Part shown: piece after piece, positions 1 through 55,987 of the stretch
Layout: each line of letters begins with the position of its first letter
Numbering within the stretch: the first letter of the stretch is position 1
Sequence record: NC_031107.2
Reading direction: 5' to 3' (one strand)
Length of the DNA stretch: 64,000 nucleotides
The notes under the pieces: model-generated
Told to the model about the DNA's origin: nothing
The model's input: the letters and a program-made list of their open reading frames with translations, nothing else
Database searches by the model: none
Program-made: the position numbers and the translations under genes

Positions 1-504
1 ATGACCACAATCGCCTACGACGGGAAAACCCTCGCGGGTGATTCCCAAACGACCCAAGGCGATATCCGCCTGTCGATGCACGCTGTGAAAATCTTTACAC
101 CGCAACCAGGTGAGTCCTGGGTGGTGAACGGGGAGCGTGCAGCATCGTTCGGGGTAGCCGGATGCCTGCAAGGGAACAACGCACTGCGTGAAGCCTTGTC
201 CAGTTGCATGAAGGGTTACCAGGGCTTAACCGGCAGCACACGATTCCCGAAAGGGATTGTGATTAGCTACCTGGTCGTTACCGAGGGTGGTAACGTTTAC
301 GCCGGTGGTCAATACGAGAACGACGAGATGCCATGGCTGACCAAAGTCACAGCACCCATTGCGGTGGGTAGTGGTTCTGAGTTCGCCATCGGTGCGATGG
401 CCGCAGGTGCATCCGCTGCTGACGCAGTGAGTATTGCGGCACGGTTCGATGTGAACACTGGCGGTGAGATTCGGGAGATTAGTCATGTCTCAAAAACAAA
501 ATAA
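1..504 (+). CDS. HslV/proteasome-beta-like Ntn hydrolase (phage type)
   Basis: N-terminus MTTIAYDG..LAGDSQ (Thr nucleophile after Met removal) and IAVGSGSEFAIGAM match the HslV/Ntn pattern. The ORF starts at base 1, so the upstream context is unseen. Confidence 0.7.
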   Translation: MTTIAYDGKTLAGDSQTTQGDIRLSMHAVKIFTPQPGESWVVNGERAASFGVAGCLQGNNALREALSSCMKGYQGLTGSTRFPKGIVISYLVVTEGGNVYAGGQYENDEMPWLTKVTAPIAVGSGSEFAIGAMAAGASAADAVSIAARFDVNTGGEIREISHVSKTK

Positions 505-612
505 ACCTCAGGAAGAACCAAAACAGCTAGGGCTGCGGGATACGGTGTTGACGCTGTTTGGCCAACGCAAGAAATCGCCACCTATCCGCATGGCACCTGA
601 GTGAAGAATTCT

Positions 613-688
613 GGGGGAGTAGTTCAACTGGTAGAGCGTCGGTCTCCAAAACCGAATGTTGCAGGTTCGAGTCCTGTCTCCCCTGCCA
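613..688 (+). tRNA. trnW: tRNA-Trp (CCA)
   Basis: 76-nt cloverleaf: acceptor GGGGGAG/CTCCCCT, anticodon arm TCGGT-CTCCAAA-ACCGA, T loop TTCGAGT, encoded CCA. Confidence 0.95.
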
Positions 689-751
689 AATTTAGCCAGC
701 AAGAATGTGAGAAACCACGAGAGGACAATTGACCATTCGCTGGAGATTCTC

Positions 752-976
752 ATGAACTTGTATTTGCTAGAACGTGAAGACGATGTCGGTTACGACGAGT
801 TTGATTCCATAGTCGTTGCTGCTCCTACGGAGCAAGCTGCGCGCGCAACGAAGCCCAACCATGGGCGCTGGACTGATGTGTTTCGCAACGAAGACGGAGT
901 AATCCTGAGATGCAAACACATTGGCACAACGCACTTACCGGAAGGGGTCGTCCACGAATCGTTCAACGCAGGCTGA
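752..976 (+). CDS. small phage hypothetical protein (74 aa)
   Basis: ATG at 752 after GGAGA. The upstream part of the track ORF (656) overlaps tRNA-Trp and is rejected. Confidence 0.65.
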   Translation: MNLYLLEREDDVGYDEFDSIVVAAPTEQAARATKPNHGRWTDVFRNEDGVILRCKHIGTTHLPEGVVHESFNAG

Positions 977-1006
977 ATACCGGTGGGCTTCGGCCCACCA
1001 CACCTT

Positions 1007-1082
1007 GGGGCAATGGCTCGAGTGGTTAGGCGACGAATTGCAAATTCGGATCAGGTCGGTTCAAGTCCGGCTTGCCCCTCCA
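1007..1082 (+). tRNA. trnC: tRNA-Cys (GCA)
   Basis: Acceptor GGGGCAA/TTGCCCC, anticodon loop TTGCAAA, T loop TTCAAGT, encoded CCA. Confidence 0.9.
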
Positions 1083-1215
1083 ACACACTTGGCTCGGTGT
1101 GTTACTTTTGAAATAGAAAACCCGTAGAGCCTTTCGGGGGTGTTGCCAGATGGAGTGCTTGTTACTCTACGGTCTTTCACTCCTGAGCCCTGGCTCACCC
1201 ACCTAAAGGAAAATA

Positions 1216-1644
1216 GTGATGTTTGGATTCTTAAAGAAACGTTCTTCTCGTGCGATGTCTGAAATCAAAAAGTTCGACAAACGCGACCTGGCCGAAGCTG
1301 TGGTAAATGCTGCGTATCTGATTGCGTATGCTGACGGCGAGCTGGAGTCTTCCGAGAAAGCGAAAATCGAACAAGTGCTGCGCGCGAACCCGGTTCTCTC
1401 TAACTTCCAGAGTGAACTTAATGCTATCGCGTCCACGATCATTGCACAGCTGGAAGCCGACATCGACATCGGTCGTCGTGCTGCCCTTCGTCAGATTGCT
1501 GACGTGAAAGGCGACCAGCGTGAGTCCGAAGACGTGCTGGACGTGGCTGTTGCTATCGCCCGCGCGGATGGCGAAATCGAACCTGCCGAAGAAGCGATGC
1601 TGAAACAGATCGCCGAAGCGATGGGTCTGCGTTACGACGCCTAA
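1216..1644 (+). CDS. terB: TerB-family (tellurite-resistance/co-chaperone-like) protein
   Basis: Duplicated TerB-type motifs AYLIAYADGELESSEK and VAVAIARADGEIEPAEEAMLKQIAEAMGL; AAAGGA RBS. Confidence 0.8.
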   Translation: MMFGFLKKRSSRAMSEIKKFDKRDLAEAVVNAAYLIAYADGELESSEKAKIEQVLRANPVLSNFQSELNAIASTIIAQLEADIDIGRRAALRQIADVKGDQRESEDVLDVAVAIARADGEIEPAEEAMLKQIAEAMGLRYDA

Positions 1645-1647
1645 GCC

Positions 1648-1830
1648 ATGAAGCTGAAAACCAAGTTATACATCGCGGCCGCGTTGCTGCTGATGCTGCT
1701 TGGCAACTTCATAGGCCGTGCGTTTACGCTCATTGCCTACGTCGCTGTAATCAGCTTAGTAGCCTACCTGGCATGGCCAGTGATCAAAACCTTTGCCGCT
1801 AAGTCAAAAGCGAAGGCGAAGAAGGTCTGA
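1648..1830 (+). CDS. small two-TM membrane protein
   Basis: 60 aa with two hydrophobic segments and basic termini, located 3 nt after the terB stop. Confidence 0.65.
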   Translation: MKLKTKLYIAAALLLMLLGNFIGRAFTLIAYVAVISLVAYLAWPVIKTFAAKSKAKAKKV

Positions 1831-1892
1831 TTGATGGTGCGGGGTCGTTCCCCCGCACCTCCTCTAATTCTCATCTAAAAATAGGTATAATC

Positions 1893-2729
1893 ATGAGAAA
1901 GCTTCTAATCGGTTTAGTAGCAGCCATTAGCTTTAGCGCGTTTGCAGGACAGGACGTGACCATTACCACCGGTCAACAGGGTTTAACGTACAACGCCACG
2001 TACGGCGTTAATCTTGCCAGTGCTCTGAACGAGTTCGGCAACAAGTCCACAGTGGTACCGTCAAAAGGTTCCCTGGACAACCTGGATAAAGTGGCTGCCG
2101 GTACGGCGCAGCTCGGCTTTACACAGGCAGACGCATTCCAGTTCTGGCGCGCACAGCACCCGAACGAAGCTCAGAACGTAGACATCGTTGGCCAGTTGGG
2201 TGACGAGTGTGTCTTCGTGGCTGTGAAGAAAGACGGTAAGGTCGGTGATGAAGCTGACCTCAAAGACGGCATTAAGATTGCTGTCGGTGAACCGGACTCT
2301 GGCTCATACGCCAGTTGGCAATACCTGCAAGGTTTGGTGAAGCAGTATTCGAAAACCGAAACCTATGCGAAAGGCGGCATCCGTTCTCTGTCCAAAGTGG
2401 CCACGGGTGAATACGACGCGTTCATGTGGGTAAGTGCGCCGGGCAAACCTAATAAGTTTCTGGAAGCGGTTAACCAGGAGAGTTCAGGTCTGAAACTCAT
2501 CGACATGAACAACTGGAACGTCAACGACAAACTGCCTAACGGGCAAGCGGTCTACGAGAAGAAGTCCGCGAAAGTTGACAACAGCGCGTGGTTCGGTGGT
2601 GACGTTAAAGTCCCTTGCACCAAAACACTGGTAGTCGCTAATACCGATGCCGGTGACGATCTGCTGGAAGCCGTTTCATCCATCCTCCTGAAAAATGCAC
2701 CACGCATCATGGGGACGGCCAAACAATAG
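1893..2729 (+). CDS. secreted periplasmic-binding-protein fold, TAXI-TRAP receptor-like
   Basis: Signal peptide MRKLLIGLVAAISFSAFA; motifs ITTGQQGLTY, SKGSLDNL..V..G.AQLGFTQAD and IAVGEPDSGS resemble TAXI solute receptors. Confidence 0.7.
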   Translation: MRKLLIGLVAAISFSAFAGQDVTITTGQQGLTYNATYGVNLASALNEFGNKSTVVPSKGSLDNLDKVAAGTAQLGFTQADAFQFWRAQHPNEAQNVDIVGQLGDECVFVAVKKDGKVGDEADLKDGIKIAVGEPDSGSYASWQYLQGLVKQYSKTETYAKGGIRSLSKVATGEYDAFMWVSAPGKPNKFLEAVNQESSGLKLIDMNNWNVNDKLPNGQAVYEKKSAKVDNSAWFGGDVKVPCTKTLVVANTDAGDDLLEAVSSILLKNAPRIMGTAKQ

Positions 2730-3230
2730 CTGTGTGTTAATTGCACTGACGGGGCTGATATCCCTGTTGGAACGGTTTCATCTTTTGGGGTTGGATGAAG
2801 TGAAGAAACGTGGCACGCCAATAAGTCCACGTTAACCGGATTGCACAAAGAACTATCTGCGGGTAGGCAATCCTGCCGTTATGAACTTATCAGGTGACTA
2901 AACATGGAAGAGTTGTTCAGAGCGTTTCTGTACCGTATGGGTACCTGGTTGAAAGACCTCAAGCTCTGGAAGCTCGATACTTATTGGTTATCAGGATGTG
3001 GGACTGAACGCCATAAACCTGTTTTAGGACGAGAGTCCTCAACCCAGGCGACGTCTATTGTAGACGAAGGTCAAGCACCGGCCCATTAAGCCGACTCGCT
3101 GACATAGGCAACCTTCACCCCACAATCTGAATGTAACTGATGGGATTGAGTTCCCAGTGTGAATGAGCAGCAGTGTGCTGCAGTTGGCGCGGTACCTCAT
3201 ACGGCCGGTACGTCACGAAAAGAAAGTAAG
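2730..3230 (+). ncRNA. candidate large structured ncRNA (class unknown)
   Basis: About 500 nt with no convincing CDS and more than 10 consecutive hairpins, including GAAA and GAGA tetraloops; leads directly into the tRNA array. Confidence 0.4.
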
Positions 3231-3233
3231 TAG

Positions 3234-3301
3234 GGTTGGTGCTTGGAGGCGCTAAGACCGGAGTCCTGCTCTGGCTCAGAAGAAGAAGTCCATCAACCCC
3301 A
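3234..3301 (+). ncRNA. candidate tRNA-like RNA lacking a T arm, CCA-ended
   Basis: GTTGGTG/CATCAAC stem + C + CCA, with two internal hairpins. Confidence 0.4.
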
Positions 3302-3307
3302 CTTAAT

Positions 3308-3383
3308 GCGAGTATAGCTCAGCTGGTAGAGCATCTGGTTCCCAACCAGAGGGTCGTGAGTTCGAATCTCATTACTCGCTCCA
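3308..3383 (+). tRNA. trnG: tRNA-Gly (CCC)
   Basis: Acceptor GCGAGTA/TACTCGC, anticodon arm TCTGG-TTCCCAA-CCAGA, encoded CCA. Confidence 0.95.
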
Positions 3384-3491
3384 ATAAATCAATGACTTAT
3401 AGTGATTTCCCCATTTCGCTACAAGACTGCACCAATATATGTAAAACACCCAAGACGTGTGCGAATTCGAAGTTGAGTTCTCAGACGTATT

Positions 3492-3577
3492 GGCGCGGTA
3501 CTCAAGCGGTCAACGAGAGCAGACTGTAAATCTGTTGCCTTCGGGCTTCGTAGGTTCAAATCCTTCCCTCGCCACCA
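3492..3577 (+). tRNA. trnY: tRNA-Tyr (GTA)
   Basis: Class II tRNA with long variable arm, loop CTGTAAA, T loop TTCAAAT, CCA; one acceptor mismatch. Confidence 0.93.
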
Positions 3578-3583
3578 ATATTT

Positions 3584-3659
3584 GTTCCTGTCGTCTAGTG
3601 GTCCAGGACACCTGGTTTTCAACCAGGCAACCGGAGTTCAATTCTCCGCAGGAACGCCA
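3584..3659 (+). tRNA. trnE: tRNA-Glu (TTC)
   Basis: Acceptor GTTCCTG/CAGGAAC, anticodon arm CCTGG-TTTTCAA-CCAGG, CCA. Confidence 0.93.
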
Positions 3660-3664
3660 AACAA

Positions 3665-3810
3665 TGACACTGACTCACGCCGCCTTTGAGCAGCAGAAGA
3701 AGTCTGGCAGCCAATAAAAGCATCCACCGTCTACTGGGCCTGAGGGTCTCGGATAGAGGGTCGCTAAGCGCAGCCGTATAACTCCGTGGGATTCGGAGAA
3801 GTGTCACCCA
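3665..3810 (+). ncRNA. candidate 146-nt RNA with tRNA-like acceptor and T-like arm
   Basis: TGACACT/AGTGTCA + C + CCA; hairpin CTCCG-TGGGATT-CGGAG at the T-arm position; interior fold unclear. Confidence 0.4.
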
Positions 3811-3814
3811 TTAT

Positions 3815-3891
3815 AGAGCCGTAGTCGAGTTGGTTAAGACGCCTCCCTGTCACGGAGGAGATCGTGGGTTCGAGCCCCATCGGTTCTGCCA
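3815..3891 (+). tRNA. trnD: tRNA-Asp (GTC)
   Basis: Acceptor AGAGCCG/CGGTTCT, anticodon arm CCTCC-CTGTCAC-GGAGG, CCA. Confidence 0.95.
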
Positions 3892-3897
3892 AACATC

Positions 3898-4018
3898 AGT
3901 CACTTAATCTCAATCGGATAGAGACAGAACATTACTTCAACAACACTAGGGTGTCCATGGCACGTTGGCGTTGTGTAATGCGATGAGGTTACAGGTTCGA
4001 GTCCTGTAGTGGCTACCA
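3898..4018 (+). ncRNA. tRNA-shaped RNA with ~45-nt extended anticodon arm (121 nt)
   Basis: Acceptor AGTCACT/AGTGGCT + A + CCA, D arm TCTC/GAGA and canonical T arm ACAGG-TTCGAGT-CCTGT; no 7-nt anticodon loop. Confidence 0.65.
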
Positions 4019-4026
4019 TTTTAAAT

Positions 4027-4103
4027 TGTCTCGTAGCTCAGTTGGTTAGAGCGCTCGCCTGATAAGCGGGAGGTCGGTAGTTCAAGTCTACTCGAGACAA
4101 CCA
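4027..4103 (+). tRNA. trnI: tRNA-Ile (GAT)
   Basis: Acceptor TGTCTCG/CGAGACA, loop CTGATAA, CCA. Confidence 0.95.
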
Positions 4104-4110
4104 GCATTAT

Positions 4111-4191
4111 GGGAACATTGTCACCATCAGTGATGACAGGAGTGATGGATTCGTCCCCACTCGACTGGGTGGAAGCCTGGGTGTTCCCCCA
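4111..4191 (+). ncRNA. non-canonical cloverleaf with G-1:C73 and CCA
   Basis: G + GGAACAT/GTGTTCC + C + CCA; three internal arms, the middle one capped by a TTCG tetraloop instead of an anticodon loop. Confidence 0.5.
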
Positions 4192-4197
4192 TTTAGT

Positions 4198-4275
4198 GGT
4201 GTATGTAGTTCAGCTGGTTAGAATACTGGCTTGTGACGTCAGTGGTCGAGAGTTCGAGTCTCTCCATACACCCCA
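4198..4275 (+). tRNA. trnH: tRNA-His (GTG)
   Basis: G-1, acceptor GTGTATG/CATACAC, C73, loop TTGTGAC, CCA. Confidence 0.95.
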
Positions 4276-4280
4276 GTTCC

Positions 4281-4370
4281 GGAGAATTGTCCGAGTGGCT
4301 GAAAGAGCTCCCCTGCTAAGGGAGTGGTGGCGCAAGCTGCCCGAAGGTTCGAATCCTTCATTCTCCGCCA
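4281..4370 (+). tRNA. trnS: tRNA-Ser (GCT)
   Basis: 90-nt class II tRNA, loop CTGCTAA, long variable arm, G73, CCA. Confidence 0.95.
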
Positions 4371-4377
4371 AATCTAT

Positions 4378-4498
4378 AGTCGCCTAGCTCAAGATTAGAG
4401 CACACCTTACGACCAATACTGACCAACACGCACCGCGGTGCAATAATGGCGGTGGCGTAGTGGTGCGGTTACCGGTTCAAGTCCGGTGGTGACTTCCC
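4378..4498 (+). ncRNA. second tRNA-shaped RNA with extended anticodon arm (121 nt)
   Basis: Acceptor AGTCGCC/GGTGACT, D arm GCTC-AAGATTA-GAGC, T arm ACCGG-TTCAAGT-CCGGT; ends T-CCC; ~45-nt paired insertion in the anticodon arm. Confidence 0.65.
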
Positions 4499-4504
4499 TA
4501 CAAT

Positions 4505-4583
4505 GAACCCGTTAGCTTGAGGAAAAAGCACCCGACCCATAATCGGATTTTTCACTGGTTCGAATCCAGTACGGTGTTCGCGA
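4505..4583 (+). tRNA. degenerate tRNA with CAT anticodon (Met/Ile2-like, possible pseudo-tRNA)
   Basis: T arm ACTGG-TTCGAAT-CCAGT and anticodon arm CCGA-CCCATAA-TCGG, but C33, a bulged acceptor and a 3-prime end GCGA instead of NCCA. Confidence 0.5.
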
Positions 4584-4588
4584 TTTAT

Positions 4589-4664
4589 GACTCTGTAGTT
4601 CAGTTGGTAGAACGGATGACTGTTAATTATCTCGTCGCAGGTTCGAGTCCTGCCGGAGTCGCCA
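4589..4664 (+). tRNA. trnN: tRNA-Asn (GTT)
   Basis: Acceptor GACTCTG/CGGAGTC, anticodon arm GATGA-CTGTTAA-TTATC, CCA. Confidence 0.95.
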
Positions 4665-4669
4665 CTTTT

Positions 4670-4940
4670 GTGTTACCCTTGTCCCGGAGACATTCCTAAG
4701 ACAAATCCATCCATGGTCGGGGGTAGCACGAAAAACCATTCGCTGTTCCGTATCCTTTACGTTAGTCTCCAGACGCGTTTCGGGGTACGGGATGGTGAAC
4801 CACTTTCTGGTTGCATCATCATTTCCGTGAACCCTGCCTGGTGCGTTGGTGCGGATGTAACCGGAATCAATTAGCCCATGCCGATGCGCTAAATGTCTTC
4901 CGAACGCGACCCGCGTTCTGCCCAGGAAGACGCTCCTGTT
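4670..4940 (+). ncRNA. run of long GU-rich stem-loops, candidate small RNAs
   Basis: 11-, 17- and 13-bp closing stems at 4670-4729, 4739-4799 and 4805-4866, followed by CCA, CCA and TCA; two further hairpins to 4940. Confidence 0.45.
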
Positions 4941-4967
4941 GTAATTTCAATGCCAGTACCAGGGAAG

Positions 4968-5009
4968 CACCCACTCTTCGGAGTGGGTGTATTCTTTTTT
5001 TATTTTTTT
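4968..5009 (+). terminator. intrinsic terminator ending the tRNA operon
   Basis: CACCCACTC-TTCG-GAGTGGGTG followed by a long T tract. Confidence 0.85.
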
Positions 5010-5106
5010 GCATTCGAAAATATCACAGATATATTTTACCTATACGAGATGAGAAAACCTTATCTCCAAGCGACCCATTCGACTATAGCCTTAAAGGAGT
5101 TATACC

Positions 5107-6078
5107 ATGCCACGTAATTACCGCCCTACTGCTGCTTCTGCTATTGATGGTTTAGTAGCCGCCCACTACAGCCGTGAAGAAGCCACCCGGATTCGTCCGT
5201 TCCTGCCTTTGCACTTTGATAACTACGTAGCGTTGCCGAGTGCGAACTACGAGTTCTGGAATGCGTACCGTGCGGTAGCCGATGCCCTGACGTACGACCG
5301 TCACAAGTTCCGTTTCTATTTCTGGCGTGACCAGGAAATGAATCACATCCCAACCAGCCCGTATGTGAAGATGCACTACGAGTCACCAACCTTTAGTGCC
5401 GAGTTTACCGTAATAGAGTTTATCCGCCACTTTGGCCAGGCTCTGTATACGGAACATGGCGGTGAAGGTCTCGGTCGTCGTTTGACCTACGTCAACGGTG
5501 GGTTGCGTGTCAAGACCCGTGTCTTGCGTGACTTGTTCGATGCCGTGGGTGCACAAGACGATGCCCAGCAATTAACCGGCCGTCGGATAATGACGCAGAG
5601 GGTAGAAGTACCGCCTCCGGCGGATACCTTTAACGTGAAAGAAGTTCTGTCAGCCTGGCGGGCAGGTGAACGCATTCATCGGACGTTACACGGAAGTCGT
5701 TTCGACCGTAAAGCCCACTGGGTGAATCCGATGCAAGACGGTTATGACATTGCCCGTTATCTCGACTTGCAAGCTATGCGCCGGGACAAAGAAATCATTA
5801 GCCGTCACGAGTTCAACCGTCTGCGCTCTGACGTGTTAACGGTACTGACGTCGCCGGATATCTTCCCAGCGTACACGATGTATCACCGTTCCTTGATTCT
5901 CAATAACCACGTCTTCGGTGAGAGCATTGACCCAACTGGGTACATGCGCTTGAACTTACCGCAAGTCGACCAGGTCTTTCCAATCGGTTACACCACACCG
6001 AAAAATACTATCAGTGTAACCATGCCAAACGACGTCTTCGATATGTTTACTCCCGAAGACTGGCACACCGTATTGTAG
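5107..6078 (+). CDS. hypothetical protein (323 aa)
   Basis: Long ORF with AAGGAG RBS; no recognisable motif. Confidence 0.8.
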   Translation: MPRNYRPTAASAIDGLVAAHYSREEATRIRPFLPLHFDNYVALPSANYEFWNAYRAVADALTYDRHKFRFYFWRDQEMNHIPTSPYVKMHYESPTFSAEFTVIEFIRHFGQALYTEHGGEGLGRRLTYVNGGLRVKTRVLRDLFDAVGAQDDAQQLTGRRIMTQRVEVPPPADTFNVKEVLSAWRAGERIHRTLHGSRFDRKAHWVNPMQDGYDIARYLDLQAMRRDKEIISRHEFNRLRSDVLTVLTSPDIFPAYTMYHRSLILNNHVFGESIDPTGYMRLNLPQVDQVFPIGYTTPKNTISVTMPNDVFDMFTPEDWHTVL

Positions 6079-6165: not shown

Positions 6166-6573
6166 GTGAAACATACAAGCTTAAACCACATCGAGTTTTA
6201 CTCCGCCCTGAGTGACGGGCAAATCCCAACCACCTGCTTACCCGGTTGTGAATGGGAGCAACACCTTTTCCTGGATTTGATTCCCCTGTTGACAATGCAC
6301 CCAGATTACATTCACTGGTTCCAGTCTCTGTCAGCAATTAAAGCTGTAGGGTTTCGTCGTGGCCCGGATATCCCCGTTGTTGATACCGGGATTAACATCA
6401 CGCGTACCGAATGCACTTCACCCACCGAACGGTTTATCAACTCGTTTATGAAAGAGATGGCGCTGGCACTCAAAAGCAAAAGCCATCCCTATGAGGAGAT
6501 TTTCGCGGTGTTACTGGACGGGTTTTATACATTCCAACTCAAACACTATAAAACATTGTCCACCCTACATTGA
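6166..6573 (+). CDS. hypothetical protein
   Basis: GTG start after AGGAGG. Confidence 0.7.
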   Translation: MKHTSLNHIEFYSALSDGQIPTTCLPGCEWEQHLFLDLIPLLTMHPDYIHWFQSLSAIKAVGFRRGPDIPVVDTGINITRTECTSPTERFINSFMKEMALALKSKSHPYEEIFAVLLDGFYTFQLKHYKTLSTLH

Positions 6574-54706: not shown

Positions 54707-55987
54707 ATGTCAAACTTTGCAAAACGCAGAATCGCTCGCGAGTCCGTTGAGACCGAAGGCGATGTAATCGACGGTATCAGCAACGTTGAGCCAGCAGAAG
54801 AGAACATCGACGTCCAGCTGGCCGAAGTGGCCTCTATGGATGGTCAGCTCGAGCAGCTGGAAGGTGACGGTGAAACGCTGGCTGCGGACACCGAACGTAC
54901 TGAAGCAGCGATTGACTCTGCTGACGACGACATCGAAAACGGCGAAGAAATGCCGGAAGAAGCGATTGCCCACCACGAAGTGGCGCAAGAGTCTATCCGT
55001 AAGCGTTGGGGTATCGATCGCACCAAACTGGCGCGCGAATCTTTCCGCCGTGGCCGTGGCATGACCAAAGCCGCGCAGGAAGGCTGGAAAGAAACCCTGA
55101 AAGATCTGTACAAGCGCTTCATCGAATTCTGTAAAGAAGTGATTGGCAAGATCAAAGATCTGAAACTGAAATACATCAACGTCGGTAAGTCTGCGCAGAA
55201 ACGCGCCAAGGCGTACCAGGAAGCGATCCGTAAGCTGGGCAAAATTAAATCCGGTAAAGAGAACATCTCTGGCGGCTTTATCAGCAAACTGTCCATCGAA
55301 GGTAAATTCGACGTTGCTAACTCTATTGCCATCGCGAAAGACGTGACCGGCGGTAAAGTGAAAGGCGCGATCACTGCCCTGGCTAAACAGGCAGATGAAA
55401 CTGCGGTTGCTGTGAGCAAAGGCGACAAAGATGCGTTCTCTGCTCTGCGTGGCAACGAAGCTGTTACCCTGTTCGGTACCACTGCAACCAAACTGCGCAA
55501 CCTGCCGCAGTTCGAAGACAGTGAATCTCAGAAACTGCTGGCACTGCCGGGCAACGCCTACATCCAGTCTGGTTCTAAGAAACTGCCGGGTGACCACAGC
55601 TTCACTGCAATCGCGTTCATGTCTACTGGCGACAGCAGCGATGAGAAAGAAGTGTCTGTACCTAACGCTTCTTCTCTGTCTTCTGCTGCGTCTGCACTGG
55701 ATGCTATCGGTAAGAACTTCGAAGGCGTGCTGAAAGACTTCCGCGTCTACGACAGCGAAATCGAGAAGCTGCAGCAGGCAGCTGAGAAAGCGGCTTCTGC
55801 GCTGGATAAATCCAACGACGAAACCGAGTGGGAAGGTCTGCGCTCTGCACGTTCTGCAGCTGACCAGGCTGTTAAGAACTACCAGACCCTGAACCGCGCC
55901 GTGAACTACGTTGGTAACACTGTTATCAGCGGCCTGAATGGCTACATCGGTGCTGGTATCGGCGCGTACGAAAAGTCTAAAGCTTAA
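54707..55987 (+). CDS. abundant internal head/ejection protein (phiKZ gp93 family, paralog 1)
   Basis: Acidic propeptide with ARE/S, AQE/S and AQE/G sites; amphipathic WKETLKDLYKRFIEF; strongly biased codons. Confidence 0.75.
   Translation: MSNFAKRRIARESVETEGDVIDGISNVEPAEENIDVQLAEVASMDGQLEQLEGDGETLAADTERTEAAIDSADDDIENGEEMPEEAIAHHEVAQESIRKRWGIDRTKLARESFRRGRGMTKAAQEGWKETLKDLYKRFIEFCKEVIGKIKDLKLKYINVGKSAQKRAKAYQEAIRKLGKIKSGKENISGGFISKLSIEGKFDVANSIAIAKDVTGGKVKGAITALAKQADETAVAVSKGDKDAFSALRGNEAVTLFGTTATKLRNLPQFEDSESQKLLALPGNAYIQSGSKKLPGDHSFTAIAFMSTGDSSDEKEVSVPNASSLSSAASALDAIGKNFEGVLKDFRVYDSEIEKLQQAAEKAASALDKSNDETEWEGLRSARSAADQAVKNYQTLNRAVNYVGNTVISGLNGYIGAGIGAYEKSKA

Follow-up and report, generated by a model that had tools for sequence, protein, structure and literature searches.

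Conserved structured RNAs other than tRNAs occupy most of the tRNA region of Erwinia phage vB_EamM_Asesino

What lies between the transfer RNA (tRNA) genes of a jumbo phage, and is it anything other than spacer? The window studied here is a stretch of 64,000 nucleotides that matches bases 1-64000 of Erwinia phage vB_EamM_Asesino (Erskinevirus, an SPN3US-like jumbo phage) with 100% identity. Downstream of a TAXI-like gene, it carries a dense + strand RNA locus at 2730-5003. An earlier interpretation of this locus, made from the letters alone and referred to below as the sequence-only reading, described eight canonical tRNAs interleaved with at least five units that are not normal tRNAs (3234, 3665, 3898, 4111 and 4378), a degenerate CAU tRNA and three long stems. 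We observed that about two-thirds of this 2.3-kb "tRNA region" codes for conserved structured RNAs other than tRNAs. We consider it rather probable that the locus is a single + strand RNA operon in which nine tRNA genes alternate with cassettes for conserved non-decoding RNAs, and that host enzymes would free these RNAs.

We assessed the class membership of the units with ARAGORN and Rfam. The two programs were concordant on nine tRNAs at 3308-4664, eight strong ones and a weak CAU tRNA, and the eight canonical tRNAs described between the TAXI-like gene and the terminator were all recovered. Default ARAGORN called none of the units 3234, 3665, 3898, 4111 and 4378, and the Rfam tRNA model (RF00005) did not match any of them, even at E ≤ 10. 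The sequence-only reading had allowed that every unit might fall into a known Rfam family. No family was assigned to any of the five; across 1-5400 at E ≤ 10, Rfam returned the tRNAs and chance-level partial matches (YrlA, mascRNA, plastid motifs). ROOL and GOLLD, large RNAs that phages carry close to tRNAs, were also unmatched in the Rfam scans of 1-5400 (E ≤ 10) and of the whole window (gathering threshold). The transfer-messenger RNA (tmRNA), intron, low-threshold and mitochondrial modes of ARAGORN disagreed on the units, with calls that included Arg with an intron, Leu(taa) and His(atg), and we rejected these as tRNA assignments. The GenBank record lists 4378-4498 as a 121-nt tRNA-Ile(aat) and places three small open reading frames (ORFs), gp9, gp20 and gp21, in the remaining space. 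The expectation that standard finders would miss or mislabel the units was therefore accurate: default ARAGORN misses all five, and 4378 is Ile(aat) in GenBank and Arg(acg) in the intron mode of ARAGORN (option -i).

To follow the units across related phages, we compared the homologous locus in 20-odd relatives from Erskinevirus, Wellingtonvirus, Machinavirus, Seoulvirus (including SPN3US) and Moabitevirus, together with IMG/VR contigs. Covariation in relatives had been named beforehand as a test of the sequence-only reading, and we found it for the 3234, 3665 and 4111 families. Unit 3665 (3666..3810, + strand) consists of an acceptor stem and a T arm around a ~110-nt body. The acceptor stem has 7 bp (3666-3672 with 3799-3805), and the T arm (3782-3798) has the loop UGGGAUU. 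A covariance model identified 13 members, with one copy per phage and two in Moabite. Family members keep the leader AACAAU ahead of a first G and a tail of the form N-CC-(C/U). The acceptor stem covaries (GACACUG/CGGUGUC, GACACCC/GGGUGUC, GGUACCU/AGGUACC, GACGCCU/GGGCGUC), a second helix occurs in seven different Watson-Crick combinations, and the T arm follows the pattern CUCCG-UGNNAUU-CGGAG. Over the 13 sequences, 95.8% of cells were paired and 11 of the 15 pairs tested had changed on both sides. The family score was 0.394, compared to ≤0.11 for slid controls, and none of 500 shuffles equalled it. The covariance-model alignment was used here instead of an unrefined MAFFT alignment, on which RNAalifold gave the T arm alone.

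We searched for the 3665 family outside these phages. The covariance model found no member in T4 or in the bacterial contigs from the pattern scan. The exact T-arm pattern had at least 120 matches in bacterial genomes, about the number estimated from collection size for 16 fixed bases, and of the 62 genome loci on which the covariance model was run, none was confirmed. In Serratia phage Moabite, the two 3665 paralogues lie at 3920-4040 and 4523-4644 of sequence L027, one of them beneath an annotated "hypothetical protein".

Unit 4111 (4111..4191, + strand) folds as a four-way junction with an 8-bp terminal stem and three hairpins, and CCA (4189-4191) stands directly 3' of the stem. The hairpins are capped by UCAG, UUCG and GGAA loops; a tetraloop hairpin occupies the place where the T arm would be. 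Six homologues were found, in Seoulvirus and Machinavirus, and all four helices covary. We observed pairing in 94.5% of cells and changes on both sides in 14 of 28 pairs, counts that take in a probable chance hit at 55393-55475 (E 0.58) and slightly inflate the number of variable pairs. The family beat 500 of 500 shuffles and all slid controls. CCA directly follows the stem in two of three close homologues, and the Machinavirus homologues have CCG. The 8-bp stem with CCA is also the acceptor arrangement of tRNA-His (G-1:C73), and the unit lies directly upstream of tRNA-His. That 4111 copies the acceptor end of tRNA-His is a lead only.

Unit 3234 (3234..3303, + strand) is a conserved two-helix hairpin element. 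In its family of 16 sequences, 98% of cells were paired and seven pairs had changed on both sides. The family score was 0.415, compared to ≤0.09 for slid controls, and again 0 of 500 shuffles reached it. The T arm is absent from this family and CCA is not conserved, and we therefore rejected 3234 as a tRNA mimic and describe it as a hairpin element. The five unusual units are real, as had been claimed; tRNA mimicry does not hold for this one. BLAST of 3234 and 4111 against 5,426 E. coli genomes returned no match, so there is no evidence of host-RNA mimicry by either unit, at least in E. coli.

The 3234 element forms the 3' end of a block of ~570 nt upstream of the tRNAs, in which it follows a first structured domain, a small ORF and a second structured domain. 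This block is conserved in 53 phage records, nearly all of which leave it without annotation. Domain 1 (2748..2900, + strand), upstream of the small ORF, has three conserved helices, one hairpin bearing a 7-nt YUGRURU loop. RNAalifold predicted 24 pairs for it across 14 phages, 16 of which show compensatory change. The small ORF, gp9 (2904..3089, + strand), encodes 61 amino acids, and an ORF of 55-69 amino acids is open at this place in 15 of 15 phages. Homologues of gp9 share an LWxLxxYWxxG motif and a QAPAH end. It had no Pfam or PHROG match, and its conservation suggests that gp9 is probably a real gene inside an RNA-rich block. Domain 2 (3040..3232, + strand) overlaps the 3' end of the ORF and contains several conserved hairpins, with compensatory changes relative to Stratton and EaH2 and across genera.

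Units 3898 and 4378 share a 7-bp acceptor stem and carry a hairpin of ~50-60 nt in place of the anticodon arm. In unit 3898 (3898..4018, + strand), a tRNA acceptor stem is joined to a canonical T arm and to a D arm that contains GG, and the unit ends in ACCA. Its one homologue, in pEa_SNUABM_9, is 76% identical. Ten of the 36 predicted pairs differ between the two, seven on both sides and three on one side, and none is broken. The predicted fold is more stable on the + strand (−38.6 kcal/mol) than on the − strand (−26.3 kcal/mol), with a z-score of −2.6. A search with the exact 3898 pattern gave 0 matches in IMG/VR and three chance matches in metagenomes. The tip of the long arm (3950-3956) reads UCCAUGG in both homologues and holds the palindrome CCAUGG and the triplet CAU. 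Such a tip might dimerise through loop-loop contacts or imitate a CAU anticodon.

Unit 4378 (4378..4498, + strand) likewise joins a tRNA acceptor stem to a canonical T arm; its D arm lacks GG, its insert at the anticodon arm measures ~50 nt and its tail is UCCC. Its fold reaches −47.2 kcal/mol on the + strand and −40.8 kcal/mol on the − strand (z-score −2.9). It was found in Erskinevirus only, where it is 97.5% identical in EaH2 and Stratton. The Arg(acg) model of ARAGORN -i places a 48-nt insert at position 37/38. In EaH2 the anticodon stem restored by this model is weaker, and no group I intron was matched in Rfam.

The CAU unit (4505..4582, + strand), which scores 33.7 bits with the Rfam tRNA model, is a non-canonical tRNA(CAU): its acceptor stem is bulged and CCA is absent. 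It had been taken for a degenerate tRNA. We observed instead a family that every genus keeps, in which the anticodon arm does not vary, the acceptor stem covaries, the CGCC tail is conserved and CCA is never encoded. In ChrisDB, SNUABM4, SNUABM9 and one uncultivated viral genome (UViG), this unit has a long variable arm of ~20 nt.

The three long stems of the sequence-only reading are also supported. The first, tailA (4666..4735, + strand), is a long G-U-rich hairpin with 14 homologues and a covarying outer stem. It is conserved in all genera and takes a different position in the cluster in Machinavirus. Its fold is −27.5 kcal/mol on the + strand and −18.9 kcal/mol on the − strand, with z-scores of −4.0 and −1.0, respectively. 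The other two are long Erskinevirus hairpins on the + strand at 4739-4800 (z-score −5.8) and 4805-4866 (z-score −3.3), the pairs of which are preserved by substitutions relative to Stratton. The annotated gp20 and gp21 (4713-4874 and 4893-5117) overlie conserved RNA hairpins and the terminator, match no protein family, and are likely GenBank annotation errors. All z-scores tested on the − strand lay between −1.0 and +0.05. Both the folding energies and the G-U pairs favour the + strand, in line with the strand assignment that had been made from the G-U pairs.

Is the locus punctuated as a tRNA operon would be? An intrinsic terminator closes it at 4967-5003 on the + strand (hairpin at 4967-4990, a 10-bp stem with six GC pairs, followed by a T run). 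This is the sole strong + strand intrinsic terminator within 2730-5003, and it stands at the end of the locus, so 2730-5003 can be one transcription unit. A sigma-70 promoter scan gave background levels, and such a scan is uninformative for this phage type. The spacers between units measure 5-9 nt and, as previously described, are AT-rich and resemble the tRNA-tRNA spacers. U is found at −1 upstream of 10 of 13 units and tRNAs, and G at +1 is common. The sequence-only reading had most units ending in NCCA exactly like true tRNAs. The encoded 3' tails are ACCA in 3898, A-CCCA in 3665, CCA right after the 8-bp stem in 4111 and U-CCC in 4378; a strict NCCA end is present in 3898 only, and what the homologues conserve is NCC, with U at −1.

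Most cassettes combine an acceptor-type stem stacked on a T arm or a tetraloop hairpin with an AU-rich, U-ending spacer before the unit and NCC after it. The acceptor and T arms can stack into a helix of 12-14 bp. Because of this punctuation, the U at −1, the stackable acceptor/T helices and the conserved NCC, RNase P-type processing of the units is plausible. The description of the units as + strand structured RNAs that lack usable anticodons, sit in tRNA-like punctuation and have no terminator between them is supported by these data.

We also assessed how the units are distributed. All relatives share a common plan, in which the conserved non-coding block is followed by tRNAs with gaps of 100-500 nt, then by the Asn tRNA, a non-coding stretch and a conserved gene. 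Segment-wise BLAST showed that the modules occupy different positions and adjoin different tRNAs across phages. In the collections scanned, the families were restricted to SPN3US-like and Moabite phages. In SPN3US (sequence L016, 2725-3180), ARAGORN detects no tRNA, and the phage keeps 3234, the CAU unit, tailA and a tRNA-like element whose "anticodon" loop has 3 nt. Because SPN3US keeps non-canonical units in a stretch with no ARAGORN tRNA, the units are not mere tRNA spacers.

The families are gained and lost cassette by cassette. The differences between Asesino and a ~99%-identical metagenomic relative (L014) include entire cassettes, the edges of which coincide exactly with those of units. 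Asesino has unit 3898 and the AACAUC spacer that goes with it (3892-4018), and both are precisely absent from L014 (5830-5840). In IMG/VR, UViG 3300031418_000005 is a natural relative without 3898. After unit 4378, L014 carries a different 81-nt tRNA-like cassette (6313-6393) that is absent from Asesino.

The canonical tRNAs between these units all lie on the + strand and were called by both ARAGORN and Rfam. They are tRNA-Gly(CCC) at 3308..3383, tRNA-Tyr(GTA) and tRNA-Glu(TTC) at 3492..3659, tRNA-Asp(GTC) at 3815..3891, tRNA-Ile(GAT) at 4027..4103, tRNA-His(GTG), with G-1 at 4198, and tRNA-Ser(GCT) at 4198..4370, and tRNA-Asn(GTT) at 4589..4664. Further tRNAs, Trp and Cys, lie upstream of the 3308-4664 cluster. 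A 108-nt spacer at 3384..3491 (+ strand) has modest structure (z-score −2.4) and is confined to Erskinevirus, with BLAST matches just in Stratton and EaH2. The canonical set at 3492-4664 holds all four tRNAs with GUN anticodons (Tyr, His, Asn, Asp). GUN-anticodon tRNAs carry queuosine and are cut by colicin E5-type nucleases. Comparison of ARAGORN with GenBank pointed to two likely annotation errors in relatives: ARAGORN reads the first "tRNA-His" of Stratton (L002:3822-3901) as Asp(GTC) and the first "tRNA-Asp" of Parshik (L008:3073-3160) as Tyr(GTA). Pfam and PHROGs searches of the neighbouring proteins and of gp9, gp20 and gp21 gave no match that provides a functional lead.

Do the units belong to a kind of RNA that is already known? 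The closest systems are rnaC (species 1) and rnaD (species 2), expressed stable RNAs of unknown function in the tRNA cluster of T4 (PMC9697503). This precedent is absent from the sequence-only reading. These two RNAs measure 119-139 nt; like the Asesino units, they are non-decoding and encoded on the tRNA strand, head to tail with tRNAs. In rnaC, the 5' end pairs with the 3' end, and the fold includes long hairpins and a canonical T arm (CCGGG-UUCGAAU-CCCGG). An acceptor stem with an adjoining T arm, as in rnaC, is present in 3665, 3898 and 4378, whereas 4111 has a tetraloop hairpin instead and 3234 has neither. The covariance models of the 3665 and 4111 families find nothing in the T4 locus (L029), and the comparison suggests that the resemblance is one of kind, not of descent. 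In contrast to the two RNAs of T4, Asesino has at least five distinct families and cassette turnover, and belongs to a nucleus-forming jumbo phage lineage. Its architectures, a four-way junction with tetraloops and tRNA elbows joined to a ~50-60-nt hairpin, are also new relative to T4.

Other known systems share single features with the units. The engineered tRNA scaffold, in which an insert replaces the anticodon arm, is processed and stable in E. coli (PMC3753655). Units 3898 and 4378 are built likewise, with an insert at the anticodon stem-loop and the acceptor stem, D arm and T arm intact; the scaffolds are artificial constructs, whereas these units are natural and alike by predicted fold. 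The tRNA-like domain of tmRNA also sets an acceptor stem and T arm around a large non-tRNA body. However, the ARAGORN tmRNA search and Rfam were null, and the Asesino units have no tag reading frame, lack G3:U70 and are much smaller. YrlA RNAs fuse a tRNA-like module to another helix and are often encoded near tRNAs in phages, but their ends form a Ro-binding helix and not an acceptor stem. The YrlA match here (RF02553, 3987-4052) spans the boundary between 3898 and tRNA-Ile and scores 26.4 bits, compared to a gathering score of 69. RNAs of the 3'ETS-leuZ and P1 C4 types are functional small RNAs freed from a precursor by the tRNA-processing machinery; they are short and mostly unstructured or simple hairpins, not tRNA-shaped cassettes. 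They have no homology with the Asesino units. The families are new, being outside Rfam and not described in the literature searched, and the kind has been known from T4 for decades.

From the terminator and the tRNA-like punctuation, we infer co-transcription of the locus and RNase P processing of the units. Each cassette would be excised by the host tRNA-maturation machinery as a discrete, stable small RNA. RNase P would generate the 5' end, and RNase E, with trimming by exonucleases or RNase BN, would generate the 3' end. The CCA-adding enzyme would complete the ends where A76 is missing. This route is the one taken by rnaC and rnaD in the T4 tRNA cluster. The tRNA-like ends would then serve as a handle for processing and stability, and function would reside in the non-tRNA arms, the most likely action of which would be to bind, during infection, a protein or RNA of the host or of the phage. 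This effector role of the arms is speculative.

Several observations weigh against this proposal. Literature searches found no expression or end-mapping data for this phage group. No specific target is indicated: BLAST against the E. coli genomes was null, and the neighbouring proteins were uninformative. The encoded CCA is missing or shifted in most units, and 3665 and 4111 are not unusually stable (z-scores −0.02 and −0.85, respectively). Unit 3898 is missing from a 99%-identical phage and is therefore dispensable, and 4378 is known from two distinct sequences, so that its structure is hardly tested by comparison.

Could the units act instead as decoys or inhibitors of tRNA-targeting defences (PrrC, RloC, PARIS AriB, retron PtuAB, Schlafen-type) or of acceptor-end toxins? 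A decoy role was the proposal of the sequence-only reading. The units retain tRNA elbows and acceptor ends, and the turnover of cassettes between near-identical phages fits an arms-race locus. They also adjoin phage tRNAs of the kind proposed to counter anticodon nucleases, with all four GUN tRNAs present (PMC10264068). However, the anticodon loop or arm, where known anti-phage tRNases cut (PMC13056530, PMC10264068), is missing in all five units. A decoy role is less likely because the units have no anticodon arms. Furthermore, Pfam and PHROGs searches of the neighbours linked no defence-related protein or motif to the locus. We regard this explanation as unlikely.

It is more doubtful still that the units are unusual working tRNAs, with 4378 as an Arg(ACG) tRNA carrying a 48-nt intervening sequence at 37/38, 3898 as a long-arm tRNA with a CAU tip, and the CAU unit as a tRNA that receives its CCA post-transcriptionally. 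The insert that ARAGORN -i finds in 4378 is at the canonical position, the CAU tip loop of 3898 is kept in its homologue, and across all genera the CAU unit keeps a normal anticodon loop without variation, while its acceptor stem covaries. Against this, 48 nt is too short for a group I intron, and to our knowledge bacteria have no enzyme that would remove short tRNA introns of the protein-spliced type. No intron family was matched in Rfam; in 4378, the D loop lacks GG, and the anticodon stem that the model proposes is weakened in EaH2. The 3898 model is implausible and needs a lowered ARAGORN threshold, and 3665 and 4111 have no anticodon loop at all. A working tRNA is possible for the CAU unit and less so for 4378.

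A role in cis only, as folding insulators or as nuclease entry or stop sites that aid maturation of the tRNAs and of the small-ORF messenger RNA, appears very improbable for the units as a whole. It would account for the punctuation that the units share with tRNAs, for the placement of tailA and the long stems at the 3' end of the operon, where hairpins guard against exonucleases, and for the position of 3234 where the small-ORF block meets the first tRNA. It fits the terminal hairpins best. However, the same modules occur at different positions and beside different tRNAs in different phages, they persist without tRNAs in SPN3US, and an insulator would not need strong conservation of its loop sequences.

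Least probable of all is that the units are functionless remains of tRNA genes in decay and of recombination. In favour of this, the cluster is a hot-spot of turnover, with cassettes that differ between 99%-identical phages; pEa_SNUABM_9 contains chimeric tRNA fragments, Stratton and L014 contain extra short tRNA-like pieces, and the Asesino CAU unit has a bulged acceptor stem and no CCA. Against it, four families show conservation across genera, in which compensatory changes occur and hardly any pair is broken; loops are invariant where stems vary, and SPN3US keeps units despite having no ARAGORN-detectable tRNAs in the stretch. The retention of pairing through compensatory changes in the 3234, 3665, 4111 and 3898 families, which is our test of neutral decay, largely refutes the idea for these four.

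Our data bear on how phage tRNA clusters are read. Such clusters are usually read as lists of tRNAs, and here the annotation ignores the other RNAs or calls them tRNA-Ile or small ORFs. At least five RNA families outside Rfam are common to dozens of jumbo phages of Erwinia, Salmonella, Escherichia, Proteus and Serratia, several of which have been studied for biocontrol. Tentatively, and with less confidence than we place in the operon of alternating tRNAs and non-decoding RNAs, we suggest that the tRNA operon may act as a delivery rack, in which each swappable cassette would join a tRNA-type processing handle to an RNA payload of its own and be excised by host tRNA enzymes; the cassettes would be RNA effectors for anti-defence or host take-over and would be exchanged between phages as the need changes. 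If true, this would be the first functional lead for RNA of the T4 rnaC/rnaD type. The presence of several independent families, together with natural presence/absence variants, makes the question open to experiment.

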